From Hyphochytrium catenoides (taxonomy: Eukaryota > Protista > Hyphochytriomycota), in contig FLMG01002763.1 in NCBI GenBank assembly GCA_900088475.1, positions 1-64,000 of the forward strand: DNA of 64,000 nucleotides, written 5' to 3'. Shown one piece after another: positions 45,627 through 64,000 of the stretch. The notes beneath the pieces were generated by a model, which was given only the letters and a program-made list of their open reading frames with translations, had not been told where the DNA came from and did no database searches. Made by a program: the position numbers and the translations under genes. The number at the start of each line of letters is the position of its first letter. The stretch's first letter is position 1.

Positions 45627-48600
45627 TCAAAACGTCCTCTGCTTGGTGGATTTTCGTCTCTGCATCTCTTTAAGCTCTTTGTTCGAGAGATACCAGGCCC
45701 CAAGAAGAAAGATCAAGGCGTAAGTGCTAGCAAAGAGCACAAACCGGAAGCCTGAACCGCATCCGCACCCATGAATGTCAGACAAACGGACGGAGGACAA
45801 GTAATGAGGACCTATCAAGCAGAAGAATCGAGCGAGCGATTGTCGACATGGAGAAGTGGGAGGAGTAGGGCTAAGGGCTCAGAGGGAGGCGGCTAGACGA
45901 GGGCAACAATCGCACCCAAAGAGCTGACTAAGAGAGCACATGAAGCCTGCCTATCGTGGCCTTTCTTGGACGGCGACACCAAAAGATATAGCCGGCAGAA
46001 GGAGGAGGGAAGGTTATCTTCTAGGTGCTTACCAAGACGGTATGAGCAGGCGTTATTACATCCTTCAAAGTATGACCCCGGAACTGAGCTTCGATTGTGA
46101 ATCACATTCATCAGCCAACCTGCAAGCAGTGAAAAAGGTTACCCGAGGACCGTCATTCTGTCTTTCCAAGTTCTTTGCCACTACCCGTTCAATGCCTTTC
46201 ATGCTCAAATATGCTACCATCAGTCCATAATCAGGACAGAACCCCTTCTCCGACTGTGACTCGTAGTTGAATCTTCTCATGACTCACCTGAGGAGACTGG
46301 GGAAAGAAAATAGCCAAAGGTGTTGAAGACAATGACGGAGAATGACGAGGCGAAGGGACGCGATTCCCGAGGGACACTGGATATAAAGATTCCTGTGCAA
46401 GGGGAGAGCACACATCCACCTAAAGAAGTAGCGGGAGTCACATTAGGAGCGCAAGAAAAGAGAGTAAGAGGGGTAGCAAGACAGGTCCACCGTTTTAGAA
46501 CCATTTGCATCAGAGACAGTGTGCATTAGCTCGCAGGTGCCAAAAGGTGATGCACTTACCGAAGAAGAGCAAAGCCCAAAGAAGCAGGGCACAAACGTCT
46601 GCAGTGGGGAAAGAGGAAGCAGACGCATTAAGGTCTCAACTTGAGCCAGGAAGTATCTCAAATAACGCGTGAGACAAAACGGACTACGGACTGTGGGGTG
46701 GCAGACTGGGGCCATGATGCACTTTCGATATAGAGCTTGATAGAGGACTCACAGAGATTGTCTACGTAAGTGACTGGCGCTGCACAGCAGAGCGCCAGAA
46801 AGCCCAAGATGCAGCACACCTTCAACGTCCGAGTTCTGCAGTAGAGGAGGGAGAGTAGAGTCAAGGGCAAAGAATTTGGAATCCTTCCTGACTAGTCATA
46901 ACCTGAAGACCCTTACTTATCTCTGATGTTGATGTGGTATAGCGTGTGCCTATATTTGTTAGCGCTCACCTGTTCACAAGCCCATCATACCCGCCTAGTC
47001 TATCAATTAACCAACCACCTAGAAAAACTCCGAGAAGAGGGCCAGTGGCTGAGACGACGACGTAGAGTATATTCACGATGTAGGTTGAGCCGTGGAGCGC
47101 AGAGATCATGTACGCTGTGCTCCAGAATTGAATGCCCTAATAGACATAAGGCAGATGGCGCGTGAGACGAACACTCTCAAAACGGCGACTTCTCAAAGAC
47201 GCATTTGTTGGACGAGGAGAGAGATGGCGCGTGAGACGAACATTCTCAAAACGGCGACTTCTCAAAGACGCATTTGTTGGATGAGGAGAGAACAGGGAGA
47301 CAGACAAAAAGTAGACTAGTGTGACGAGGTGCATAAGTATTTGATAGCGCGAGATCGAGGTCAACGAAAGGCAGAGGAGGCTCAATCTGGCTGGTGTTAC
47401 ACGACCAAAATGATGCGGCAAACCCTTTCCCTAGTCTCACACCCTTTCTCTCACCGTGACTACAAAGTAGAGCGCTGTTAAGGCGAAGACTGTCAGGTTG
47501 AAGACAGGAATCTTCAAAAATGTTACGGACTTCTTGCTTGTCACCTCTGCCTCTCTGAAGCCGTTACCATCCTTCTGGAATGTGCTTCCATAGTTACCAG
47601 CCGGACTTTCAATATGATTAGCCCTTTCCGGCGATAAGGCCGGCTCACTGCTGGTTGTGGATTCTTCGGCCACTTCCTTGACGTCTGGTATGTCCTCAAA
47701 GCGGTTGCTCGGCCTTCTTTGCGCTGAGTCAAGCTCCCTAGATCGCGACACATTGCCAAATATGTTAGCAAAGACGTCTCCAAGAGTCTGGCTTGTATCG
47801 TCTCTACGAGAACCTTACTCTGCACAGTTAAGAAATACTGCTGTGCGGTTCCTGTGGTTCCTCCCACATCCCTCCATCTCCTTACAATCTCTCTTACCCT
47901 GCATCCATGTCAAATCTCCCAGGCTCGAAGGAATCGAGCCTGTACCGAGGAGTGAGGTAAGAAGCACGAAGAGCGAAGAGCTCAGCTTCCTTGATAGCAG
48001 GATGGTGATGTCCCGAGCCCAAGTCGTCCAGAACGATCTTGGTCTCCGCTTCCCATTCATAATCAGGCTACGATAACGTACTTAGTAAAAACTGCTTGCA
48101 GAGAAGGCCAACAGATCTAATGAGATCGTGCTCGCTATGATAGAGACTTTTGCCGTAATAGAAAATAGCGGAGGGGAAGTAGTAGCAGAGTCTACTGGCA
48201 ATTGCGACACCCACCCCTAATCGGCCAGGAAAAGGGAAACGTCGACCTACCTCCTCTACGGTTGTGAGACGTCGCAGGAATCTTTCCTCGACCTTCATGT
48301 GCCGCCGAGGGATGAAAAACGTGCCAACGGCAAGTGGGGCCACAAGCACAGCCTGCGGAAGTACGTTGGGAGACCATATAATTCAGAATCGAGTGAGCGA
48401 TACGGAGAACAGGAGGAGAAACAAGGTATGTAACCCCTACAGGGTGACACAGCATAGCGAAGCTAAGACTGGAAGAGGCCCACAAAGGATAGAGGGCAAG
48501 CATGTCATAGCGATGACGACAGCGGAAAGTACGGGAACAATTGACTTCTAGCAAGATAGCCCATGCCCATGCTAAAAGTGGTAGAAGACGGCTAAACAGA

Positions 48601-50487
48601 GGTACACAGTTCGCACCTGTAGTACGAAAGGAAGGCGCCAACATGCTAGGACACCACAGCCTGTAGCGCTGGAGACTGCCAGAGAGAAGGCGGCAATGGC
48701 ATATCCTGCCATAACCCCCAGAGGAACAGACCCTTGCAGAAAGCTGAGCCATCCCGTGCGCTTAGCCTGAGTCATCGAAAACCGTCTTGAGATCCTCAAG
48801 AGAGTCGTACATCCGAACAAGACGAGTAGAAGAAGCACTAAAGGGGGGTATGGCACAAAGTACGGCGAGCAAAGCAAGCAAAGACAGAGAACACACATGG
48901 GATAATCGGCATTGCAACTTCTTGAAATGAGCCTCCCCAAATACAACAAATAGCAGAGTGGTAGAGTTCAAGAGGAATACTTCTCAAAAGATGATGAGAC
49001 GGAAGTTTGCGAGAGGAGGCACCTTCGGTGCAAATTCGTCGACCCACAGCGGCGAGTAGACGCAGAGAAATGCCTGTGAATATCCAATCATCGCTCTACA
49101 CAGAATAAGAAGGAGGCTGCTCCACGAGTAGCCGGTTGGGGTGAGTGCGAACGCCAATGTCGCGATGTCATTCAAGATCAGAGCCACGCCCATCACTGTC
49201 CGCACATCGTAATGCTGACAGCAGATTAGAGCCATGCGAGAGATTGTGCCAGGGTGGAGGAGACGCGGCGTTAAATGAAAAAAAAAAAGCCAACTGATAC
49301 TGTGTGCAGAGAGGAAGAAGCATAGACTGCCATTAAGATGCATGACTGAAAGAGCCAAGAGAGAGACGTAGTGCCCGCCTAGTAAGCATCGGCGAGGAGC
49401 AAATGGGGCCCATTGGCAATGAGATAAGGAGGCACGTGGAGAGAGGAAGGCATGAATGGAGCGCGAGCAGAGGCAGAAGAGCGAAAGAGAGGGAAATCAA
49501 CCTTGAGTAAATAGGCTGCTGAGGGCGATGCTAAGCTAATTGTAAGATACACGATCCCTCCCAGCATCCCTTGTTCCGCCAAGCTCATGTTAAAGCTCTC
49601 CGCCAGCTCTACCAACAGTGCAGGCACACAGCCTGCCTCCAGATATATAAAGATCTGGAAGATTATCATCCACTAAGACGAGGAGTAAGAGCGTTAGCAA
49701 AAGAACTAGACAGATAATGAAGACCTTGGAGATGACAAGGATCAGCTATATGAGAGGGAGAACGTAAGGCCCAGCAAGGTGATAAACATTGATAACGAGA
49801 GGGATACGGTCCAAAACAAAGGGAGAAAACATCGATCGAAGTGAATAAGGAATATCGAAAAGCTACAGAGCTGGACACAGGGCGTAGACAGCCGGGAATG
49901 TCGGAGAGCCAACTAATAGAAGAACAAAAGCGAGTCATGACCCAAGAGGAGGCTGATAGGACTGAAAGGCTGGACATCTCCATACCGGGAACAGGTAAGC
50001 CGCGCCGTAGGGGTCGAGATCGGTACATTCTTCCTCCTGATACGGCGATGGAGAGACACCATCCACAGGCGAGTGCAGATTGGGTCCAGCCAATCTGGGA
50101 GGCCTCTGTAAGAGAGGGACCACAGTGCAGAGGACAGGAAGTAAGAAGGAGCTGGAGACGAGAATGAAGAGAGAGGAGCAGAGGGTAGAAGAGAAAAAGA
50201 GATTGGCCAGAAGAGGACTGGATACCTAGAGACTGGTTGCAGTCTCAGGGATCAGAAGGCCCGACAAGAGCGGATGGTCAACATAAGAGCGGCCCCTTCC
50301 CATTGCTAATGACATATGGGACGTGCTGGTGGCCAATAGATCGCACAAAGATGTAGCCAACGGTAGAAATAGATGGACTGACGTCGCATGCTGTACCTAC
50401 CTTCCTCTCTTCTGCGTCTGGACTGCTCAATTCTCCATCAGAAACGGAGGAGAGCAGGAGCGGCGTCCTCTCGTTGGCCCTCGGCAT
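45627..50487 (-). CDS. Spinster-like MFS transporter, multi-exon
   Basis: IYLEAGCVPALL...QGMLGGIVY; RAMIGYSQAFLCVYSPLWVDEFAP; WLSFLQGSVPLGVMAGY; WRLPFVLQ; last helix GFRFVLFASTYALIFLLGAW; N-terminal ERTPLL. Confidence 0.85.
47153..47291. repeat. Intronic tandem duplication, 69-bp unit x2
   Basis: AGATGGCGCGTGAGACGAAC...GAGGAGAG at 47153 and 47222, about 2 mismatches. Confidence 0.93.
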
Positions 50488-50964
50488 TTCTCCTTGCTTG
50501 AGACAGGAGACCGCAAGGGTCCCACCAATGAGAATGGGTCTCTTATAGGTAGAGAATGACAGGATCTCCCATACTTAGTGCCCTTCTGAAAACAGCGACT
50601 GAGGTAACTCAGAGCTACTTGTAAGAGAACGAAGAAGTTGAGATTAGCTGCCACCGACTGCACCGAGAGGAAGGAAGATAGAGAGGTATAGAGAGGAGAC
50701 CCAGTGAAGATAAGGCGCGACGAATTAAGGCATTGGAAGAAAATGATATTAGAAGAGATGCATCTCCAGATCCTCGCTCAGAGCTCCCTCTACCTTGGGT
50801 CAGGGCTGCCGTCGGCTCTAATAACCTTGTAAGGGCGAACAGCTTCTCAGGTCTACGAGCTTCTCCTACTCCGTGCTTCTTCTTCCTTGACCTTTCCCGC
50901 TCTATCTTTATTGGACTTCGTGCTAAGGATCGCCGACCCACGCTCCCTACTCCTTCTGGTCGGC

Positions 50965-51148
50965 CTTTCTCTCTCTCTCTCTCTGCTCTCTCTGCTCTCT
51001 CCGCTCGCTCTCTCTCTCTGTCTCTCTCTCTCTCTCTCATTCCCCTCTCTCTCTCTNNNNNNNNNNNNNNNNNNNNNNNNNNNNNNNNNNNNNNNNNNNN
51101 NNNNNNNNNNNNNNTCTCTCTCTCTCTCTCCCTCTCTCCCTCCTTCCT
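50965..51148 (+). repeat. (CT)n microsatellite with N gap (51057-51114) upstream of the MFS gene
   Basis: Seen directly. Confidence 0.9.
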
Positions 51149-51938
51149 GACGTGAGACTGCTGCTGCTGTTCCTGCTGCTCTCCTGTCACCTTCGTCACC
51201 CTTTCCCGCTCTCCTACCAGCGCACTAACTACTTCTCTTCCTCCTCCTTTATCACTTTGTCAGTAAAGAGCCGTTTGCGGCTAACATTCCAACCCAAACA
51301 CACAGAGTTGAGATCGTATTAAGCCATTACAAATCGCCATTTTGCCCGGACTCCTCTCTGTTCAGTGGAAGCTCGAAAGTGTCCTTGTCCACTTTAAGGT
51401 CGTACGCGATTTCAATACGCACTTGAAGCTTTCTCTCTGTCCTTGGACAACGAAGATCTGCACAAAATCTGAAGATTCTTCACCCGGAAACCGGACATAC
51501 TTCTAAAGCTTCGAAGGAGATCAAGACAATGGGAAGGAAGAAGGCGATGGCTCCAGGACATGGTGAAAGCCTCTGATGCCGACCAATATCTTCAATATGT
51601 GAAGATGAGCAAGAGGAGCGGATACAGTTTGTGAGTCGGTGGTATGTTGGACAGTTCTGGACCTCTAAGATTTGCTGTCGCTACCATGTTCCTCCACATT
51701 CGTTGCCATAAGAGACTCGGCAGACTCAGACATCTTTGTCTAGTGCTACGCTAGCGAGCTTCGTTGTTTCAATAGGCTACTAAAGACGAGACATAATGAG
51801 CACTGACAGGCACCAAAAGAACTGTTCCCAATCAATGATTGATTTACATGGCTTACTATGGACTTCACTATAGACATTATGGTACAACCTCCTCGTTGAA
51901 GTTCCACAACAGGCGAGATAAGGCCAAGAGATATGATG

Positions 51939-54900
51939 CTACTTCTTCCCGGCGCTTGCGCTTGAGAGTGTCTTGGGTTTGGACTTCTTGACAATCACCT
52001 TCGTACTCTTTTTAGAGACGGTCTTCTTCGACTTTAGGACCCCTTTACCCGCCTTTGACTTGGTGGCGCCTTTCTTTGAGGTGGAGCCTTCCCCGTGCCC
52101 TCCACTTGCCGCCTGGACTTTAGAGGCACTGCTTGAGGTTCCCCCACCTGCGGTGGCTGCGGAAGGGAAAAGCGAGGGCTTCTTCTTCTTCTTGAAACTC
52201 TTTTTCTTCTTCTTAGAACCTCCTCCTCCACTTCCTCCTGCCCTTGCGGCCTCTGCTGCTGCGGTGAGAGCTCCCATTGTTGATCCTTTTGCCGCTCCCC
52301 CTCCCCCTTTTGCTTTCTTCTTCTTGATGGCAACTTTGGCCTTCTTGCTAGCAGGACCCTCCTCCTTTTTCTCACCTACAGGAGCAGTGTTCCCTACTTT
52401 GGGGGTCGGAGGAGGACTGCGTGGGCGCTTCAGGCTCTTTGTTAGGGCTCTGGGTTTCTTCCATCCTACGGATGAGAGACGGTAAGAAGCGACAATAAGG
52501 ACAAGCAAGGTCAGTTCATTGAGAGCCATTAAAGATGACCTTATGAAAGAGGTGGGGCGGTAGAAAGTCTAGGTCGCTTGGGAGGACTGCTATCCATCAT
52601 ATGGCCTTTGTATCTTACTCTCTCTCCACCTTTCTCTCTTCCTCGTTCACTCTCTGTTTCCCCATCTCTCACCTTGTTCCTGCGGCGCTCCACAGCTGGC
52701 ATGGTTCTCATCCCAGCTGTTCATCACACAGTACCAGACCCTCGGCAGTTTTTCTATGTCCATATCTTTTAACAGGGCACGCCATTTCCCACAAAGAGGG
52801 TTACAGCATTGGATCCAATTGACCTCGTCCGGCTTTACTTCTGAGTGGTCAGCTCTCTAAGGAAGACGAAGATTAGACGAAGATTAGGGCAGTTGCGGAT
52901 GGAGAGAAGAAGTAGAGCGAGACAAAGACCTAGGAGGAAAATTAGACGATAGAAGAGCCACTTAGACGAAGATTAGGACAGATGCGGATGGACAAGAGGA
53001 AGTAGAGCGAGACAAAGACCTAGGAGGAATATTAGACGATAGAAGAGCCACGAGTGGCAAGTACTGAGAGGATTAGATGCACACTAGAGTTAAAGAGCAA
53101 AGCAGTACACTGAAGAGGAATAGCTAGATAATAGGCATAGAGGGTCAAAAGAAGGGCGATGGGCGTCACCTTTAGGTTCTTTGTCACTTTCACGGCAAGC
53201 CTGAGCCGTCTAGCAAGTGCCTTCATGGCCCTCCGGGCTCTAATATCACTGTACACACCTTCTGCCAGAGTCACTTTGTACTCTTCCTCTGACTTTTCAC
53301 AGGCCTGAAAGAGGGACAGGATCGTGTTAGCCACACGGGAAACCGAGTTAGACGCATGATGGCTAAAGAAGAAAATCGTGACTCTTTGGGAGCCGGGAAA
53401 GGGAATGGCGGATGTCAAAGAGTGAATAGAGGGAACACTTGTAGGCGAGAAGACCTTCTGAGGCAGCCGAGAAGCGTTATGAAGAAGCGAATAACGATGC
53501 CGTACATTTCTATTTTGATCCCATTTGTTCATGGCGCAGTACCAGCGTGTTGGCAGTGCTTCCGCGTCAACGAAATCGGGCAGTCTTCTCCACTTGAGAC
53601 ACTTGTCGCACTGCACCCAGACATCATCCCGCCTTTCCACCAGGACAGAGTTGCCCTCTCCTTCATCCCCTTCCTTTTCCTCTTTCTCTACAGAAGGTTT
53701 GATGCCATCCTTTTGGCCATCTTTTGAAGCAGTCTTGGCTGCTTTCTCCCGTTGATTCATCTTCTTGCTATACTCCTCGTCATAGAGGGGATCATCATAC
53801 CAATCACTCTCCTCACTAGAAAAAGAGTCAACCTCATCTAAGGCAGATATCGGAACAGAAGGTCCCTTTGCCCCCTTTTTTCCTTTCTTCCCTTTGATCT
53901 TCTGCTGTGCGATGATGTGCCTTTGCTGTTTTCTTCTTCTCGCTCCCTCCATCAGCCGATCTCGGACGGCGGCTTCACCCTGTGCTATCTCTGGATCTAG
54001 TGTTTTGAAGCGAAAGAGGCGAACGGCCTGAGAGAGAGATGGAGAAGGGTGTGATGCCTTCTCTGTTGTTCCTTTCGAAGGTATTGGTTGGCTATCTGTT
54101 GATGGAGGAAAGATTAAGGACGCTATCAGCGATGGAGCAAGGAGAACGGCGAGACCAAGAGAGAGAGATGAGAGAAAGCCCTTAATACTGCGCGGAACCT
54201 AAACCTGAACCCTGTTCCCCCATGGAACCATATCAGATGTGAAAAAGATGACCACGAAACGCGAAAAAATGTAAGCGGAGAGGCGTGTGCGATGCACGCC
54301 AACACGCTTCACTTCATCCTGGGTCTCTCCTGTGGTGCTCACCTGCAAGACTGGCGATTATCGAAGCCACCCATAAGTCGGTCTCAGGATGAGAGTCAGA
54401 GATGAGTTTCTTCCTTCCTTGGCCGAGGACTTCCTCTGCCCTGATCAGAGGCTCGTCTCTCTTCTTCTCATCCTCCTGCTTCTTTCTTTCTAGAAATTCC
54501 CTAAGGATCTTATCTTTCAATGGACGCAGAGCCGCCTCCCGCTGATGAAGAATTTGCATACGATTCCATGTGGAACTATAGGATAGACGGGAGGAGCAAA
54601 GAATTGGCTATTGGCGATGAAGGAGGAGCAGACATAGAGGCACAGAGAATGATTGAGACCTAAAAGGACAGAGAAGAGCCACAGACCAATAGAGAAGCGT
54701 GGGAAAGAGGAGAGGGCTTAAAAAGGGATAGAAGACCTTTTCAATAGAGAGAATATAGGGAGTTAAGGGAGACAGAGTCACCGACAAGAGGGTTCATCTT
54801 ACGCATTATGCAACAGTTCCTTCCGAATGGAGTACTGGATTTCTTCCGGCGCCGCGTTGTGTAAGGGTTCCTTGCCACTTGTCTTTAGTCTCTCAGCCTC

Positions 54901-57900
54901 GTGAGAGCCTTGCTCAAGGACGTCAAAGCCTGAGAAGCTCTCCGGCTTGTGTGAAGAGAATGCAAGAGAATTTACCAAAGATCCAGCGATTAGACACAAT
55001 TTGTCAAGCACTTCCTCACTGCACCATGCTCTATCTATCGATAAACGTAGATCATTCTGCTGGGGTTCGGACTTCCCTCATGGAGGATACAGTTCCTTTC
55101 CTTAAGGAACCTTACTTCATCACTCTGTACCCCTTACCTTCTCACTCCTAAAGACTTGTAATGTGACAGTCTCCCGCCTGTGCTGCAGCCTCTCGGTTGG
55201 ATCATCCTCTATCTTCACCTTCTCACCGGGATGGTCTATTGGGCCCATATCCACCTCCGTCATCTCCCTTTCTGTCAATTTTGACATGGCCGTCGGGGTA
55301 GGGAGAAAAGCAGCGAAAGAGATAGGAGTCGAAGGGCAAGAGGAAGAGGAATCTGAGGAGAAGCCGGACGTTGGAGAGCTGAGTGGACCTTTCTTCGTAA
55401 AAGGCCCTCCTCCACCCTTGACTTTGTGCTTAGGAGAGACCTTGCTGAGCTTTATGGCTTTCTTCGACTTCACTGCTGTCGACCCGGCAGTCTTCCTCTT
55501 CCCATTTGCAAGAGGGGACTTGGTTTTGAGCTTGATAGCTGTTCAGTATCAACATGAACCAGAGCAGGAGGGAGAGGAGGCTTTGTTTAGTGAGGCACGT
55601 GACTATAGACCTAGGAAATGTAGCGCCTGGCAGGAACCTACATAGGAAGCAGCGAGAAAGGCAACACCGTTACGCGAGAAGATTTACCTTCTTTCTCTTC
55701 ATGCTCGTCTCTCTCAGAGTCCGAGGAGAGTCTTTGCATTACGCCGCTTCCTCCTCCAGAGGCTCTCAGAGCCTTCGCAAGAGCAGTCCCCTGTCTGATC
55801 TCCTCTTCCTCATCCGAGTCGTTGGCGCCGAAACCTTCCATAGATGCCAAAAGATGGAGAGGCGTCATAGGGAACGAGCGAGACCGAGACCATGAGTTAG
55901 AGCAGAGAGTGCGCAGAGCAACTCGTTAGCTTGGCTTTTCAAAGAATGCGTAGGTTGTTGGAGCGCAGCAGAGAAAGGAAGACGTTGCAGGAGCTTCACG
56001 TGAACTACAGCGAGTACTTATATAACCAAGAGCACCTGTAAGTTGGCTCTTTGGCGTCGACAGCTTTTCCTTCTTGACTTTGGCAGTGATTTTCTTCTAC
56101 GTAGAGGCAAGTTAGTTGTCATCTGACGCGGACAGCTACGAGTCAATAACGTAGCTACCTTTTCTCCTCCTCCTTCGCCTTTTGAGGCCTTCGATAGCTT
56201 CTTGAGGAGTGTGCCATCTCCATCTTTTTTCTCCTTGCCTTTACTTGGGGTCTTAAGCGGTTGGGGCGTGGTCGCTGCTGCTGCCGGAGAGAGAGTGTCA
56301 GCCAATCACTTAGAGGACAATGGGAAGAGTGGGAAGCAAGAGCGAGGCAAGAACGTGGCCACGAGAGACGCAGCACTTGTAAGAGAGGCACACCTGCGCT
56401 TGCCGTTACTAAGCCAGAGAGCCCTATCCCAAATCGAAAGAGAGACCAGGAGGAGCGTTAGAATCGTCAAGTCAGAGCGCAGTCTGTTAAGAAATGTCAT
56501 GTAAAACCACTAGCCCATATTTGGCGCTGACGATGCACTCAAACTGGCAGAGCAAAAGCAACAAATTATGCATTTGGCGGGTCGCCTACTCTTACCCTCA
56601 ATGCGTGGCTTCCAGAATCGCTTTCTATTGTTTGTGAACCAATTGGTCAGCTGCTTCATCTCGATGCCTGTCGCGTTCATAATCTCTCTTTTCTGCGCTT
56701 CTGTAGGATAAGGATGCTTGATATGCTTTGGATCCATGATCCAATTCTTGAGGTACTCGACAGTAGAGGTCGGCAAAACAATCTTGCCCCTCTTTTTTGA
56801 GCCATTTGACGTTGAATGGCCTCTATCTGCCCGCTCACCCCCTTTGTCTTCTCCGCTTTTTCCGGATTTGGGTTCTTCATTCCCTGTGTTGTCAGACGAC
56901 TCCGAAGAGGAAGAACCTCCCTTCTGGAGTTCCAGCACTTCTTTACTCTCCAAGGATGATTGAAGCGGGGATGCGGGAGCCGGAGAGAGAGGAGAAGCGG
57001 GGCCATTCGAGACCACTGAAGGTGTCGTTTTAGCTCTCTCTATTGAGAAATGATGAGAAGATTGAGCCTGCTCCCTGGCAGCCGCAGGAGCACTGCTAGC
57101 GGAGGAAGGGTGCACCTTTCCTGCTGGTGCCAAGGTTTGAATGTGACCTACAGATTGATTTCCTGATGCTTGTGAAGAGGAAGAGATATGAGAGTGAGGG
57201 GAAGGATAGGTGTAATGATGAGGCAGAGATCCCTGGAACGGGCTCTGATGAGCAAAGCCCTGCTGCTGGTCGGTCCCCGATCTGCTGTTGCCAAGGTTAT
57301 TAGAAGGAAGCCGAAGAGCAGGAAGGCCCAGGGACAAGTTCATAGGTCCTACGAAGACGGTGCGGCAGACGAGGTAAACGTTTTGGTCTCTGTTCGGATG
57401 GTCTTGCACAGTAAAGCTTACCCTTTATACTCCCAGGAAGTGAGCGAAGCTCCTGTGGCTGATCTCTCTGCATGTGTGGCTCGGTTTGAATGTCGTTGGT
57501 GAGGGAGATGCCTCCTGGACCTTTCATGTAAGGTGAAGGAAGGCGATTCTGTTGCATGTCATTGTGCCTGCAAAGCGTAACAGTCGAGGTAAGAAATGGT
57601 AAGTCTGGAGAGACGTAAATAGTAATTGCCATATCGGTAACGCCTTGAAGCTGTTGGAGCTTACTATGGCGATCCGATTGAGATGCACAAAAGTAGAGGA
57701 GCTTGACTCAATGGGAGGATACAAGTGCAAGGAGCTCAGTTTGAAAGAGGTTGCTGTCGTACATTTGATGTCCATATCTATCTTGGGGTTGCTGGAACGA
57801 TGCTGGGCTCATATAGTTCGGAGGCATCTGGGAACCATACATTGGGATGTTCAGAGGCGGTGGAGCGTGGTGCTGGTGACTGAGAGACGAGGACGACATT

Positions 57901-59993
57901 ATGGGTTGCAGCTGCGGAGGGTGGTGCCCTCGATTGCCAGCTTCAGATTTTTTGGATGACGAAGGTGTTCCAGATAGTGATGACACCTTCCTAGCTCCCG
58001 TCTCGGCGCCGTTCTCCTCTTCTTCGTAGTCCTTAGAAGTCCTGGGAGTGGCTGGAAATCCAATAATCTCTTTCTTTCCCTTCTCCGCTCCTAAAGCTCC
58101 TCCTCCTCTCTTCAAAGCAGGTTGCGGCTCCGTTGCGGGTGGAGAGCTTCCTTCCTTTTCCACTGCTTTTCCAGCGGTAGGCTTTTTCTTTATGGGCTTC
58201 TTCTTGGTAGGAGTCTCTTCGGCCATCTCTTTGTTCTCCTTCTTCCCCTTCTTAACCCCTTTTGGTTTGGCATGTGGGGTACCGGTTTTTCCCTTCTGGT
58301 TAGACAGCTGTTGCGCTGACGAAGGACCATGAGATGGTGTCTGCTGTGGTTGATGGTGGCGAGAGGAGAGAGAGGTAGACGAGGAAGGAGGTCCCGGCTG
58401 AGGCTGTATGTGGTGCTGATGGTGTTGGTGCTGAGAGGAAGAAGACTGTTGCGGCATTACCATCTGTGACATAGACGGAGGAGGGTGCCTGAGGCTGCCC
58501 TGAGACTGTAAAGGAGAGAGCATGGGCGGCGCCCAGTCGGTTCTGAACTGATGAGGGCCCATCTGGTGTTGGTGCCCCACAAGAGACTGGTGTGAAGGCA
58601 TGTGACCCTGGTGTCCACCCATGTGATGCATTCTACCAAAGATAGGGTAAGAGGCTATGCACTCAGAGGATACTATGTACTGGGTAAAGCAACAGGCCAA
58701 CTAGCAGGTCGTAGAGGGGCGGTGACAAAAAGCAAATGAAGAGATGCCAAACAGACTCTCAAACATCTATCAAAAATAAAAGGGCAGAGAGGAAAAGCCG
58801 AAGCTTGAGAAATGTATACGGAAGGGACAAAAGCGAAAAAGGGGTCGACCAAGAGCTACAATAGAGGACTAAAGGTTAAGGCACCGCTAACAGGACGCGA
58901 ACTAACCTGTCATGATGAAGAGAAGGCAGAGGAACCATACTACTCGCAGGGCCAGGAGGGAAGCTGGACATCATCCTCTGGGGCGGAAGGGAATAACCCT
59001 GAGGCCCTCCCTGGTGGGCAAAGGGATTGTGATGATGCATAGTTGGGTGCTGCGGGAAGCCCGACGAGACACCCATTAGAGGTGGGATGGGCATCATCAT
59101 TCCTCTCATGCCAATTGAAGAAGGCACAGGACTACGCCGTTCGGGTATATCCTTCTAAAGACCGAGGAGAAGACAGAGAACGGGCCAAACAAGAAATATC
59201 GAGTTTAGCGTAAGTCAGGGGCACTAGAGGCGTACTGAACGGGCAGAAGGAGCTTTCAGATATAAAGAAAACCGCCACTTGTGCGATGCAGAGTGTGGCT
59301 CAGGACAGGTCAACAGGGAGTAACGCTGCCTAGAGTAATCGAGTAAGAAGGCAAGGCGGAAACGTTGCAGGACAGACATACAGACTTCACGGAGGCGCAT
59401 ACATCGTATTTTGAGCCCTTTCCCTGTGACGGATGATCTCCCCCGCCGCCGCCTTGTTTCTCCTGGCGGCTGCTACTAGGAGTCCCGTTGTTTAGCTGAG
59501 GTTTCCACAAGCGCTTCCTGGCATTGGCAAACCAAGTGTTCACTTGTTTGATCTCTAGACCAGTGGATTGGGCCAGCTGGCGCTTTTCCTGCAAGCCACA
59601 AGCACAAGAGAAGACAAATGGGTAGAGAAGGGCCGACGGACGGCTTACAATCAGATGAAAGGGATACGCTGAATAGCGGCGTCGCAGCAGCGAGGAGTCA
59701 GAAGCAATCTTTCGAATAGAGAAACGAGAGACACCGAGGCGGCCAGTGGGAGACAAAGAGGGAGTAGAGGGATTTTACTGAGAAGAAAGAAAAGAGGGCA
59801 AGGAAAGGAAAGCTGCAAGCACCTCTTCCGTGGGATAGGGATGCCCAACATGCTCCTTTGCCATCATCCACTCTTTCAGCATTGCCACAGCGTCTGCCGG
59901 TAGTCCGTCCTTTCGCACATTACTCGGCTTCTTTCCACCGCTATCCATGTCGCCCATACTGGACCGCTCTTGTCCCTTATTGCGATCCTTCAT
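51939..59993 (-). CDS. Large nuclear protein with two TALE-class homeodomains, two CW-type zinc fingers and a Lys-rich tail, about 15 exons
   Basis: HD1 [45 protein letters not shown]; HD2 [24 protein letters not shown]...[12 protein letters not shown]; CW1 [13 protein letters not shown]...WYCAMNKWD...C; CW2 [15 protein letters not shown]...WYCVMNSWD...C; exon phases are consistent from end to end. Confidence 0.82.
52873..53051. repeat. Intronic tandem duplication, about 89-bp unit x2
   Basis: TTAGACGAAGATTAGG...TAGAAGAGCCAC at 52873 and 52962, a few mismatches. Confidence 0.9.
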
Positions 59994-60658
59994 AGGACCC
60001 AATGATGAGCTTGTCCGGGTCTAGGAAAGTATTCAAAATGCCATGTGTAGACTTCTACGCCTGAAGATGTTGTGAGTAAGCAATGATAAACTAAATCAAA
60101 TCTCAGGCATATACAGAAAGGCGGAAGAGGATGCTTGCGGGCCAACCTCCAACCGCAGGGAAACGCGACGGGTGAGGAGCATAAACACCAAGGCCAGAAG
60201 GTCGATTTGCTGTTGCTGAGGGAACAACCAGGAGACTCTTGCGGACTTACCTTTAGAACCTCGTATCACCTCCACGGCAATCGCCTGCAGCAGGGCGCTA
60301 TTTCCGCACCAAATGGCCTGCAGGGAAAAGGGCTACCAGGGTTCAGCTTGGCACTGCAGCGCCTGTTTGCGCTCCGTGGAGCTAGAGAGGGGATTTTCAA
60401 GTTAATGTTAGACAGGGAAACGCCTCCCTTTGATCTTCCTTGATGGCAAGCGTGTAGAGGCGACGGAAGACGATAGAAATTGCCCCAAGGACGACCCACA
60501 AAAGCGTGAGTTCGCAATGGCGAAGATTTTCTGCACTGATCTCCGTCTCTTACACCTTCCTTCACCGCCGTCTGATGGCTTGCAGACTTGATGCCCCGAT
60601 TCTTCCTTTTTCTGCCCTAGGAAAGTATTGGGCGCTGAGTGCGCCCTCTGTTCCCCAG

Positions 60659-60666
60659 TCCTCTCT

Positions 60667-60707
<41 letters not shown>

Positions 60708-60728
60708 CCTCTGCCTCTGTCTCTGTCT
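60659..60728 (+). repeat. (CT)n microsatellite upstream of the homeobox gene (GA on its sense strand)
   Basis: Seen directly. Confidence 0.9.
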
Positions 60729-63005
60729 GGGCGGCTGCATGATGATGTTAGTGACCTACAGGCGGTCTCGCTCCCAACATCAACGCAGTCGACCTTCTCC
60801 CGCTTTTTTGCTCTTCCCCTGCTCTCTCGCTCTATCTAACCGCTCATTCTTCCTAGTTCCAATAATGCTACTACCTATAAAGAGTCTGAAATCTCTCCCT
60901 CCGCTCTGGCTTCCGTTTCTGTCCATTCTCAAAGTGTCTTTGGGTAAACTACGGTACATGATGTGATGGGTGGCGGTCCCACCCACCCTTAGAGAATATA
61001 ACTACAAGAATCCTAGCTCCCACCCATCCTTCTTGATCCGCAACAGGCTGATGACTCCTATTACTAAGCCCTCGTACCGTAAGAAAAGGCCCCAAGCAGA
61101 GTGATTAGTGGCGGTACTACTATGACCTACCCTCCATGGAACTTGCCTTCTTTAGTGCCTATGTTTTCTTAGGAGAAGAGGCTGATGATGGCTGTCCCGG
61201 AACCACGCCCGTTAGCTGTCTTTTTGTTCTTGTCCCCGGCTGCTTGTTACTCTCTTATGATACTGCCAAACGAGCTTTCCTAGTCAAAGTGATGGGCGAT
61301 GGTTGGCAAGCTGTACACAGTGTAATGAGGGAATGAAGAAGAAAAAGAACCACACAGGGCAGAACCTTAGGCTACGAGACAGAGAGGGAGAAATGCAGAT
61401 ACAAAGACAGCTAAGAGATACGTTAGAGATTTGGGATCACTGGAGAAGAACGAATAGCGGAGAAGGCTTGGGTGGAAGTTGATGTCTTGATCACTCCTGA
61501 AGAGTGATTCCTCCGCAGAAAAAGTCTCAAAATAGACGGAGGGCGGAGTAAGTGGGGGAACAAAGAGGGTTCATCTAAAGAAGATAGACGGCACTTATTT
61601 CGCTGCAGGGGAACAAAGGTCGTCCAGCTTTGTGGAGGGCGTGCAAGGTAGAGGCGTACAGAGATATACTGTACTACTGCTAATTGTACCGGGATATATA
61701 AGACAGAGCGGGAAGAGATGAGTTGATGGGTGACACACGAGGGGAGGCAGAAGTGGTGTTTGCTCTTGCCATCAGCCAAGCTCCTGAGTGTATTACTACG
61801 CTACAAATGAATGGACATACAGTTAGAATTTAGTTTGATGTCCTCATACTACTACTGACATCTTGGTCATTGGTTTGGCTAAACTGTATGTTTTTATCAT
61901 CAACCTGAAAATAGTCCGCTCTGGGAAGACCTATGCACTTACAGTAATAGCCTTTATAACAAGGCCTTACAAGACATGGGCCAGTTATAGTAATAGCAGG
62001 TTTTGATGCTTGCAGAAAATTTAGTCAGAGTGGGTAGCACGATTGTTGGCTATGTATATATACATGGGATGGGTGGGCAACGGCGCGGATTTGGGATTGT
62101 AACTGCTGGACAGTCTTTTTGGGTTGAGAATAATCTGATCCTTCGCCGCCATTGATCTTATGAGCCGTCCCTAGTACCGTCCTGAGCTATAGCAATGCTG
62201 ATAGTAGTTAAAAAACTGTACAAGTGAGATGCTTCCAGTAGATACACCGCCTATCAAAGCAGGCTCTAAGGCCAAGACTCAAGTCTTCCTGGATGTCTCT
62301 TCGTTCTATCTGCTTTGTCTCGAGGCACAAGTGCTACTCGTAGAGAAAACAGTGGTGGAGCAGGTGAGGCATTCCTTAGAGTTTTGCGATGACAGGTTCA
62401 CGATGAGCTTCTCCTCCTCGCTCACCGCTGACCAACTCCTTCTCTTCGCAGTCACTCTACAGAGCCTTTCTCCATATCTCCCATGGCCCCGGTTCATCCG
62501 TAATCTTCTAACCTACCTGGCTGTAGAGCTAAATCTGGGCCATTTCCATAGTCCTTACCTCACCAGCGCAGTAATCCAGGTGCAACAATAAATGGATTCC
62601 CCTAGAACTCCTAATGTAGCCTCGTGGCGGCGATGCCTTACTCCGTAGCAGCTCTTTCTTGGTAACCCGAGATTGATTCCATAGTTGGCGGCACTGTCAC
62701 CGTGGCTTTAGGGGGCCACACCCTTGAAGCAGGGGAGCGGCATACGATAGAGGAGATAGCAAAGGAACATAGACTCCTGGTACTTATGATGTAGAGTGGA
62801 GGGTCTGTCCTTTGAAATCGCACTCGTATTCCTGTTTCGCCACTGCTGCAGGAAAGTGGTAGTCTATATGAGAAACATGAGAGTGACAAGAGTTTTAACG
62901 TTAAGAAGGTGGAGCTTGAGAGGAGGCGAATGCGTCGGGCTGTATCTACAGGGCATATAAATGGCTCCAGGATTGGCCGTACTAGAATTTGTACATCCTT
63001 TGTTC

Positions 63006-64000
63006 CTAGCGACGTTTCCTAGAGCTAACGTCATCATCCCCACGCATCTCTCGATAACTCCGTTTCCCCGGTGCATCGTGATCTCTTCTCCCGTCTCGGT
63101 CTCTCCCTCTTTCCCTGTCACCCCTACTTTCACCTCTCCCGCCTCCTCTTTCTCTGCTACGATCTCGGGAGTGTCGCTCACGATCACGATCCCTACTGCC
63201 TCTATTCCTATCATGCCGGTCTCTGCTGGTGTCTCTTTCTCTTCTTCGTTCTCTATCCCTGTGTTCCCGACCATCACGGTCTCTCGAGTCATCCCTCTTT
63301 CGATGAGACTCCTGTCTGCTACGCCTGGCTCCATCTCTTTCACCATGATCTCTTTCCCTTTCTGCTTTGTCTTTGTCGTCCTTAGAAGGTGGCCTTCCTT
63401 GTCCTCCTCTGCCTCTTCCTGCTTGCTGTTCCATCCACGGACCTGGAGGAAAGGCGCCCGGCGGAGGACCACCCATCCATGGTGCCATCCCGCCAGCCAT
63501 ATCAAACATTCCCATGGCGGCAGGACCGGCCCCTGCCATCCATGGTGGCCTAGGACCTCCCATGTCTCCTGGGCCCCAACCAGGCCGTCCTCTTCCCCCG
63601 CTCTGACCTGGACCAGCATAGGGAGGTCCGGGAGGCCCACGTGGGGCTCCAGGGTAGCCCATCAGAGAGGCTCCAGGACCCCATAAAGGGCCACGAGGAG
63701 GAGGAGCGCCAGGAATCGGAAGGGAAGCTGTAGTACTTGAAGAGGGAGAAGAAGCCGGAGTCTCTCCTTGACTTTGGCTTTTGTTTGGGGTTCTGCTAGC
63801 AGATTCGGAAGCAGGTGCAGCATTGGTTTTGCTCCCTTGCGTCTCCTGCCGCAGTTAAGATTGACACGACAAGTTAGCAACAGACTACAGGGTCAGAAGG
63901 GGTCCCATCAATATAAAGTAAGGAATTGACTATCTAGCATCCATGGAAGATCAGATCACCGTTCGTTACCTTAGAAGGTGCGGTTTCAGTCTGGACGTGT
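63006..64000 (-). CDS. 3' end of a probable RNA-processing protein with Pro/Gly/Met-rich and RE/RD-rich regions; 5' part lies beyond the window
   Basis: Terminal exon about 63006-63846 reads ...PPPRGPLWGPG...GPPPGAFPPGPW...RERDHGERD...SSRKRR*; upstream exon with AAG|GTAACG donor near 63969. Composition resembles FIP1/CPSF6-type tails, but no diagnostic domain is visible. Confidence 0.65.

Follow-up and report, generated by a model that had tools for sequence, protein, structure and literature searches.

Can one protein unite a pair of TALE homeodomains with a pair of CW-type zinc fingers, and thereby join sequence-specific DNA binding to the reading of methylated lysine 4 of histone H3 (H3K4me)? 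The question is posed by positions 59993–51939 on the minus strand of a 64,000-nucleotide stretch of the genome of the stramenopile ‘pseudofungus’ Hyphochytrium catenoides (contig FLMG01002763.1, positions 1 to 64,000; hereafter, the window), for which an initial annotation had proposed a protein of this kind. Our analysis suggests that the region is most likely a single 16-exon gene predicted to encode a nuclear protein of ~1617 aa, in which two homeodomains (HD1 and HD2) are followed by two CW domains (CW1 and CW2), that is, the architecture HD-HD-CW-CW.

The Pfam profiles Homeobox_KN and zf-CW, run on the pieces of open reading frame (ORF) with cutoffs of 24 and 27.5 bits, respectively, retrieved all four domains on the minus strand within 59993–51939, where the initial annotation had placed them; a six-frame scan with the family hidden Markov models found no further homeodomain or CW in the 64-kb window. 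HD1 is interrupted by an intron (59909–59823 and 59588–59493, minus strand); its C-terminal half matches Homeobox_KN at 4.4e-11 (42.9 bits), and the N-terminal half, which holds the HPYP motif, reaches only 0.03 when scored alone. HD2, at 56788–56600 (minus strand), is matched by the same profile at 1e-14 (54.5 bits). The HPYP motifs of both domains align onto those of PKNOX1 and MEIS2, placing the loop extension by which TALE homeodomains are recognized, and the recognition helices keep W48, F49, N51 and the basic residues at 53–55 (WFANARKR in HD1, WFTNNRKR in HD2). Numbered on PKNOX1 and MEIS2 (WFINARRR), the two domains differ at position 50, with Ala in HD1 and Thr in HD2, just as had been read from the letters. 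No MEINOX, PBC or BELL/SKY dimerisation domain was found, exons 1–6 giving no Pfam family beyond the homeodomain.

The two CW domains are recovered with comparable scores: CW1 at 53622–53506 and 53304–53281 (minus strand; 3.1e-14, 53.1 bits) and CW2 at 52820–52674 (minus strand; 1.2e-15, 57.7 bits). The latter match spans profile positions 1–47 of 47 and falls in exactly the exon, 52673–52856, that had been postulated to carry it. The four zinc-binding Cys and three Trp expected of the zf-CW family (PF07496) are kept in each copy, with the spacing C-x2-C…C…C in CW1, once spliced, and C-x4-C…C…C in CW2. CW1 and CW2 each possess both Trp of the pocket, one in WVQC/WIQC and one in KWR, and these align with the pocket residues of MORC3 and ZCWPW1, so that the earlier statement on retained Trp residues is borne out by alignment to solved CW domains.

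How are these domains joined? All four lie on one phase-consistent chain of 16 exons on the minus strand, with GT-AG borders at every intron, running from an ATG at 59993 to a TAG at 51941–51939 (coding sequence of 4854 nt, 1617 aa); the exon ends agree with those of the initial annotation. Exon 1 (59823–59993) contains the N-terminal half of HD1 (aa 29–57), and oomycete double-homeodomain proteins align by tblastn to 59927–59823 within it. The model has only 28 residues before HD1 and the true start is uncertain, because an AG acceptor at about 60030 precedes the ATG in an open frame, making an upstream exon possible. Exon 2 (59403–59588) supplies the C-terminal half of HD1 (59588–59493). Exons 3–5 (59154–58907, 58632–57763 and 57567–57422) encode a 638-aa linker rich in S, P, G, Q and H, which has no Pfam match, and exon 6 (56596–57348) carries HD2, which includes HPYPTEAQK, with a strong donor after it. 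The bridge between HD2 and CW1, rich in K, E and S, is encoded by exons 7–9 (56280–56159, 56096–56036 and 55834–55688) and exons 10–12 (55475–55138, 54945–54803 and 54575–54343), where no recognised domain was found. The bulk of CW1 (53622–53506) lies in exon 13 (53506–54095), and its end (53304–53281, ACEKSEEE, with the fourth Cys) in exon 14 (53170–53304) together with the linker toward CW2; CW2 itself (52820–52674) occupies exon 15 (52673–52856). Finally, exon 16 (51939–52465) encodes a tail of 175 aa composed of 25% K, 15% G, 14% A and 14% S, without a Pfam match. In the predicted protein, HD1 (aa 29–89) and HD2 (aa 728–790) are thus separated by the long linker, a charged spacer of 507 aa leads to CW1 (aa 1298–1344), and a linker of ~50 aa to CW2 (aa 1394–1442), after which the Lys-rich tail follows.

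Several lines of evidence, all of them indirect, support the proposal that this is one protein: the sizes of the gaps, splice and coding scores, the distribution of polymorphism, the conserved CW-linker-CW module and a similar predicted protein, P0255, from another stramenopile. The 15 spliced-out gaps measure 62–315 nt, with a mean of 213 nt and none larger than 315 nt, and in the H. catenoides genome introns average 208 bp and exons 228 bp (PMC5795050). Outside the locus, coding sequence on the minus strand resumes ~1.9 kb downstream and ~3.0 kb upstream. Removal of a 234-nt intron restores a continuous HD1, and oomycete proteins align across that intron; likewise, removal of a 201-nt intron brings ACEKSEEE, with the fourth zinc ligand of CW1, to the place where MORC3 reads …FRNCEVPEE. 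Since the interrupted domains are restored in both cases, these two introns can be regarded as validated. The junctions of exons 13, 14 and 15 are supported in turn, because CW1, the linker and CW2 (aa 1298–1442) align as a single block to the CW tandems of many multi-CW proteins.

Between HD2 and CW1, the model rests on splice and coding signals. Splice sites were scored with position weight matrices trained on the other junctions of the model, and among 284 open splice paths from exon 6 to exon 9 the model is the top-scoring one. The junction of exons 6 and 7 is strong (donor 9.4, acceptor 12.5), and therefore the frame appears to run past HD2 rather than the homeodomain gene ending there. 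In a leave-one-out codon score, the frame of the model ranks first in 16 of the 16 exons and nearly all introns are negative; this is weak support, because the score largely follows purine richness and GA microsatellites also score high. A sliding coding score likewise tracked purines and wrongly preferred the plus strand at the transporter-like gene at 48190–50030 described below; it was accordingly given little weight. A codon model trained on the long ORFs of the window was dropped, many of these being antisense low-complexity stretches.

Sequence variation offers a view of the locus that includes the bridging exons. Over the 6 kb between 53500 and 59499, 83 positions distinguish the window from public DNA contigs, with about 1% divergence in introns, a pattern that fits a heterozygous diploid or differences between strains. 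The 40 differences listed divide into 23 within introns (2252 nt) and 17 within exons (3748 nt); 11 of these 17 are at codon position 3 and 9 are synonymous. All five of the single-nucleotide polymorphisms (SNPs) listed for the bridging exons 7, 8 and 10 are at codon position 3 (5/5), and of the seven listed in exon 4 three are synonymous and four are not. Polymorphism thus favours introns and third codon positions, the bridge exons between HD2 and CW1 included. This pattern bears directly on the suspicion that the locus is no more than a relic, in decay or without expression, whose open chain is an artefact of flexible exon choice. The long low-complexity stretches and two AAG acceptors are in keeping with such decay, and an open path is easily found, because 284 alternatives exist in one sub-region. 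Nevertheless, a relic appears highly improbable, given exons poor in polymorphism with a bias to third codon positions, four domains that are intact, far above the Pfam cutoffs and in possession of their key residues, and a model in which no frame disruption has to be bridged.

Is the arrangement seen elsewhere? A search with an oomycete double-homeodomain protein yielded a single comparable protein, P0255 (EukProt GSMAST32.ASY1.ANO1.836.1, 539 aa), the entry name of which suggests a single-cell assembly of a marine stramenopile (MAST). It contains homeodomains at 66–125 and 142–200 and zf-CW at 304–338, that is, two TALE homeodomains and then a zf-CW in the same order as in the window, and shares the homeodomain signature. 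Unlike the window protein, P0255 is threefold shorter, with 17 aa between its homeodomains, ~100 aa before the CW and one CW detected; furthermore, the homeodomain tree assigns its two homeodomains to the non-ochrophyte side, unlike HD2 of the window.

Apart from this protein, the combination was not encountered. All 23 proteins matched by the long multi-CW query P0140 in a region search contain CW only, with no homeodomain among them; the Atlas cluster sets hold no cluster with both domains, the look-alikes of P0255 there including a cluster with PHD and Homeodomain from Streptophyta; and a contig scan with P0255 revealed no CW at 65 homeodomain loci in JGI metagenomes. The protein of the locus itself found no self-match in searches of 1.84 billion representatives or 5.8 billion proteins. 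A full-text search of the literature turned up no paper on a TALE homeodomain combined with a CW-type zinc finger. Given that the homeodomain–CW combination was found only in the window and in P0255 across these searches, it is evidently rare. The view of the initial annotation that the architecture is not known from characterised proteins therefore stands in part: the searches gave no paper on such a combination and only these two proteins with a homeodomain and a CW, but double-TALE and HD-HD-CW precedents do exist, themselves uncharacterised. We consider that the HD-HD-CW-CW architecture is probably real and, within the searches made, undescribed, representing a new combination of known parts.

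Besides the purine dependence of the codon score, several observations weigh against a single gene. With a score of 3.1 versus 4.3–13.9 elsewhere, exon 9 has the poorest acceptor of the model (AAG, 55834); two ATGs in frame (55868 and 55841) shortly precede this exon, and a TATA-like heptamer, TATATAA, is found at 56025–56018. The sequencing contigs over the locus are genomic and cover the introns, with no splice joints. None of the 150 best CW matches among the 1.84 billion representatives contains a homeodomain, and no homeodomain–CW linkage was detected around three long genes for multi-CW proteins or around two homeodomain genes of oomycetes. The oomycete double-TALE genes encode proteins of ~500 aa that end ~130 aa past the second homeodomain, without a CW and with an unrelated neighbour, and P0255 itself is a gene prediction without DNA on record, with a partial CW match (profile positions 3–37) in which the first Trp is replaced by Tyr. 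One sequencing run, X3, was considered as cDNA (454 adaptor, loose end at 57411) and rejected: it extends over introns 2, 4, 6 and 11, and exon 4, at 870 nt, is left without depth.

Because of the weak acceptor, the in-frame ATGs and the TATATAA element, a separate CW-CW gene could start before exon 9. The locus would then consist of two neighbours on the same strand, a double-TALE factor made of exons 1–7 or 1–8 and a CW-CW reader made of exons 9–16, beginning at ATG 55868 or 55841. Such a division would also fit the oomycete orthologues, which have neither a CW nor a CW neighbour, and the relatives of the CW domains, which are stand-alone proteins. We nevertheless regard two genes as an unlikely, if still serious, explanation. 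The strong exon 6-to-7 junction carries the frame beyond HD2, and exons 7 and 8 look coding. The first gene would have to end at ~56018 or ~55930, so that a 3′ untranslated region (UTR), a promoter and a 5′ UTR would need to fit into just 60–150 nt, compared with 2–3 kb for the intergenic spans on either side of the locus. P0255 contains HD-HD-CW in a single predicted chain in a different stramenopile. Moreover, exon 9 is 147 nt long in phase 1-1 and therefore exon 8 can join the strong exon 10 acceptor in frame, so that the weak acceptor is avoided altogether.

The same frame-neutral cassette, a candidate for alternative splicing or for an internal start, leads to a further possibility, namely, a single locus with two outputs, in which the full-length fusion is accompanied by HD-only and CW-only isoforms arising through an internal promoter or alternative poly(A) sites. 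Such a scheme could draw on the ATGs in frame and on the TATA-like element of intron 8, and it also fits every argument for continuity. It seems rather improbable, however, considering that only 406 of the 18,481 gene models of the source genome are annotated with multiple splice forms (PMC5795050).

With the single 16-exon gene as the preferred reading, what are its homeodomains related to? Relatives were sought with contiguous stop-free pieces of the model, under a length filter that left out long proteins, ORO and SAM among them; the search with the HD2 exon matched stramenopile TALE proteins only. Two homeodomains occur in Saprolegnia diclina SDRG_14172 (53–113 and 307–371), S. parasitica, Achlya, Thraustotheca and Aphanomyces; in the relatives from Phytophthora and Peronospora, the second copy is degenerate; and in Thalassiosira exigua two TALE homeodomains are just 17 aa apart. 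Two Homeobox_KN domains are present in one chain in P0158–P0164 and P0255, and the same holds for the window under the splice model of exons 1–6. Being found in oomycetes, some diatoms and P0255, the double TALE is a recurrent stramenopile theme, and these predicted proteins constitute an uncharacterised family.

The oomycete double-TALE proteins (Saprolegnia diclina SDRG_14172/P0159, Achlya ACHHYP_16135 and Thraustotheca THRCLA_11300) resemble the window protein in having the first homeodomain near the N-terminus and a P/H-rich linker, the alignments running from HD1 into exon 3, and in lacking MEINOX and PBC. They also combine one Thr50 with one Ala50 homeodomain, albeit in the opposite order, and share a C-terminal motif (…MNFQDIL…) that is absent from the window protein. 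In homeodomain trees, which were built on 73 columns and have low resolution, HD2 belongs to a supported clade (99/95) with ochrophyte homeodomains, with identity of up to 78%, whereas HD1 is placed opposite, among the domains of oomycetes and P0255; the two diatom copies represent a local duplication of their own. Falling on opposite sides of the tree, HD1 and HD2 appear to be different classes rather than recent copies; 73 columns are too few to establish orthology with the oomycete and MAST domains or the order of events.

The best solved match of HD2 is PKNOX1 (1.6e-12). The HPYP loop extension and the WFxNxRKR helix are common to the window protein and the animal MEIS, PKNOX, TGIF and PBX; in contrast to the latter, the window protein has no MEINOX or PBC, its loop exceeds that of MEIS and PKNOX by two residues, and residue 50 is Ala or Thr, not Ile or Gly. 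Without a MEINOX, PBC or BELL domain, it is therefore not a member of the heterodimerising classes (GSP1/GSM1, KNOX/BELL).

The longer loop is a feature of a whole stramenopile TALE group that includes HD2 and P0158–P0224 (signature W[ML][ML]SPEH..HPYP): compared with PKNOX1 and MEIS2, the loop between helices 1 and 2 contains two additional residues, amounting to an extension of five residues versus three. In the same group, a TALE homeodomain is combined with a C-terminal RING finger in P0220, P0275, P0282 and P0269, from Logan, ENA and JGI assemblies, and an Atlas cluster matching TALE and RING has 65 members, for which Bacillariophyta is the commonest recorded phylum. Tandem TALE homeodomains on one strand were also observed on metagenome contigs, namely, L059 (JACCDI010024091.1, 4536–5406), L003 and L004; no CW was detected on any of the three, L059 having about 1.8 kb after the second homeodomain.

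The relatives of the CW part are of a different kind. Most of the 150 best CW matches carry three or four CW domains and come from protists and metagenomes. In Thraustotheca clavata THRCLA_22383 (P0006, with three CW), the MMETSP protein P0049 and Chlorokybus P0001, the CW-linker-CW tandem aligns to aa 1298–1442, and the flanks are K/E-rich. These protist multi-CW proteins differ from the window protein in that they usually possess three or four CW domains and have no homeodomain, either in the protein or, for the three with long contigs, nearby.

Could the CW pair read methylated histones? Among solved structures, the best relative of CW1 is the CW domain of MORC3 (4e-12), a binder of H3K4me3, to which the stretch WVQCDACLKWRKLPD was aligned; CW2 is closest to ZCWPW1 (2e61), aligning at 3.3e-7, and shows the C-x4-C spacing of the ZCWPW1 type. 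The methyl-lysine pocket of CW domains is built by two Trp (PMC9043364), and MORC2, which is devoid of the ‘floor’ Trp, fails to bind H3K4me3 (PMC5811534). MORC3, ZCWPW1 and ASHH2, all solved readers of H3K4me, agree with CW1 and CW2 in the four Cys and in the three Trp, of which two belong to the pocket and one to the core. Judging from these conserved residues, CW1 and CW2 probably bind methylated H3K4 tails, a preference for a particular methylation state being unreadable from sequence. The company kept by the domains is different: the host proteins of MORC3, ZCWPW1 and ASHH2 type carry ATPase, PWWP and SET domains, respectively, whereas the partner in the window is a homeodomain pair.

The union of a DNA-binding domain with a histone reader has parallels in plants. 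PHD-finger homeodomain proteins embody the same concept with a PHD instead of a CW. The VAL1 and VAL2 repressors couple a B3 DNA-binding domain to a CW, so that B3 takes the place of the homeodomain; like the PHD-homeodomain proteins, they belong to an unrelated lineage and show no similarity to the window protein beyond the domains. A parallel for the double homeodomain is DUX4, in which two homeodomains of one chain bind DNA together; the DUX4 pair lies outside the TALE class, and its linker is short, as opposed to 638 aa in the window protein.

How might such a protein work? TALE homeodomain proteins are conserved heterodimeric switches of haploid–diploid transitions in plants, green algae, brown algae and fungi. 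HD1 and HD2, belonging to different classes and differing at residue 50, probably bind two half-sites, and could do so from one chain. This intramolecular pair would then perform the work of the usual two-protein TALE heterodimer, in a protein that has no MEINOX or PBC. The CW pair, for its part, would hold methylated H3K4 tails, tying sequence-specific binding to the chromatin state of promoters, and the Lys-rich tail may provide nuclear import or a non-specific contact with DNA or the nucleosome. Both the intramolecular pairing of the homeodomains and the reading of H3K4me are suggested by conserved residues, and a link to life-cycle control of the GSP1/GSM1 or ORO/SAM kind is likewise an inference.

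A broader scenario, which we consider improbable, can be put forward only speculatively: HD-HD-CW would be an old stramenopile invention that replaced the TALE heterodimer and made binding dependent on H3K4me, was kept in hyphochytrids and a MAST lineage, and lost its CW in oomycetes and diatoms, thereby constituting a developmental or life-cycle switch that reads chromatin directly. If the proposed mechanism is correct, two unlike TALE homeodomains joined to methyl-lysine readers without a dimerisation domain would amount to a different wiring of the TALE switch and would tie sequence-specific binding directly to H3K4 methylation in a group of eukaryotes that has received little study. A further outcome is an uncharacterised family of double-TALE proteins, spread over oomycetes (a group with major pathogens of plants and fish), diatoms and MAST lineages.

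Downstream of the locus, at 48190–50030 (minus strand), hydrophobic ORF pieces resembling MFS transporters (for example, …LCRAMIGYSQAFLCVYSPLWVDEFAPK) represent the next gene. Upstream, the next block is an ORF of 218 aa at 63006–63662 (minus strand), with a G/P-rich N-terminal part and a C-terminal part composed of RD, RE and RS repeats, a low complexity akin to that of splicing factors. Both flanks of the locus contain (GA)n/(CT)n microsatellites, at about 50800–51250 and 60550–60850, the downstream one of which includes a run of N that corresponds to an assembly gap.

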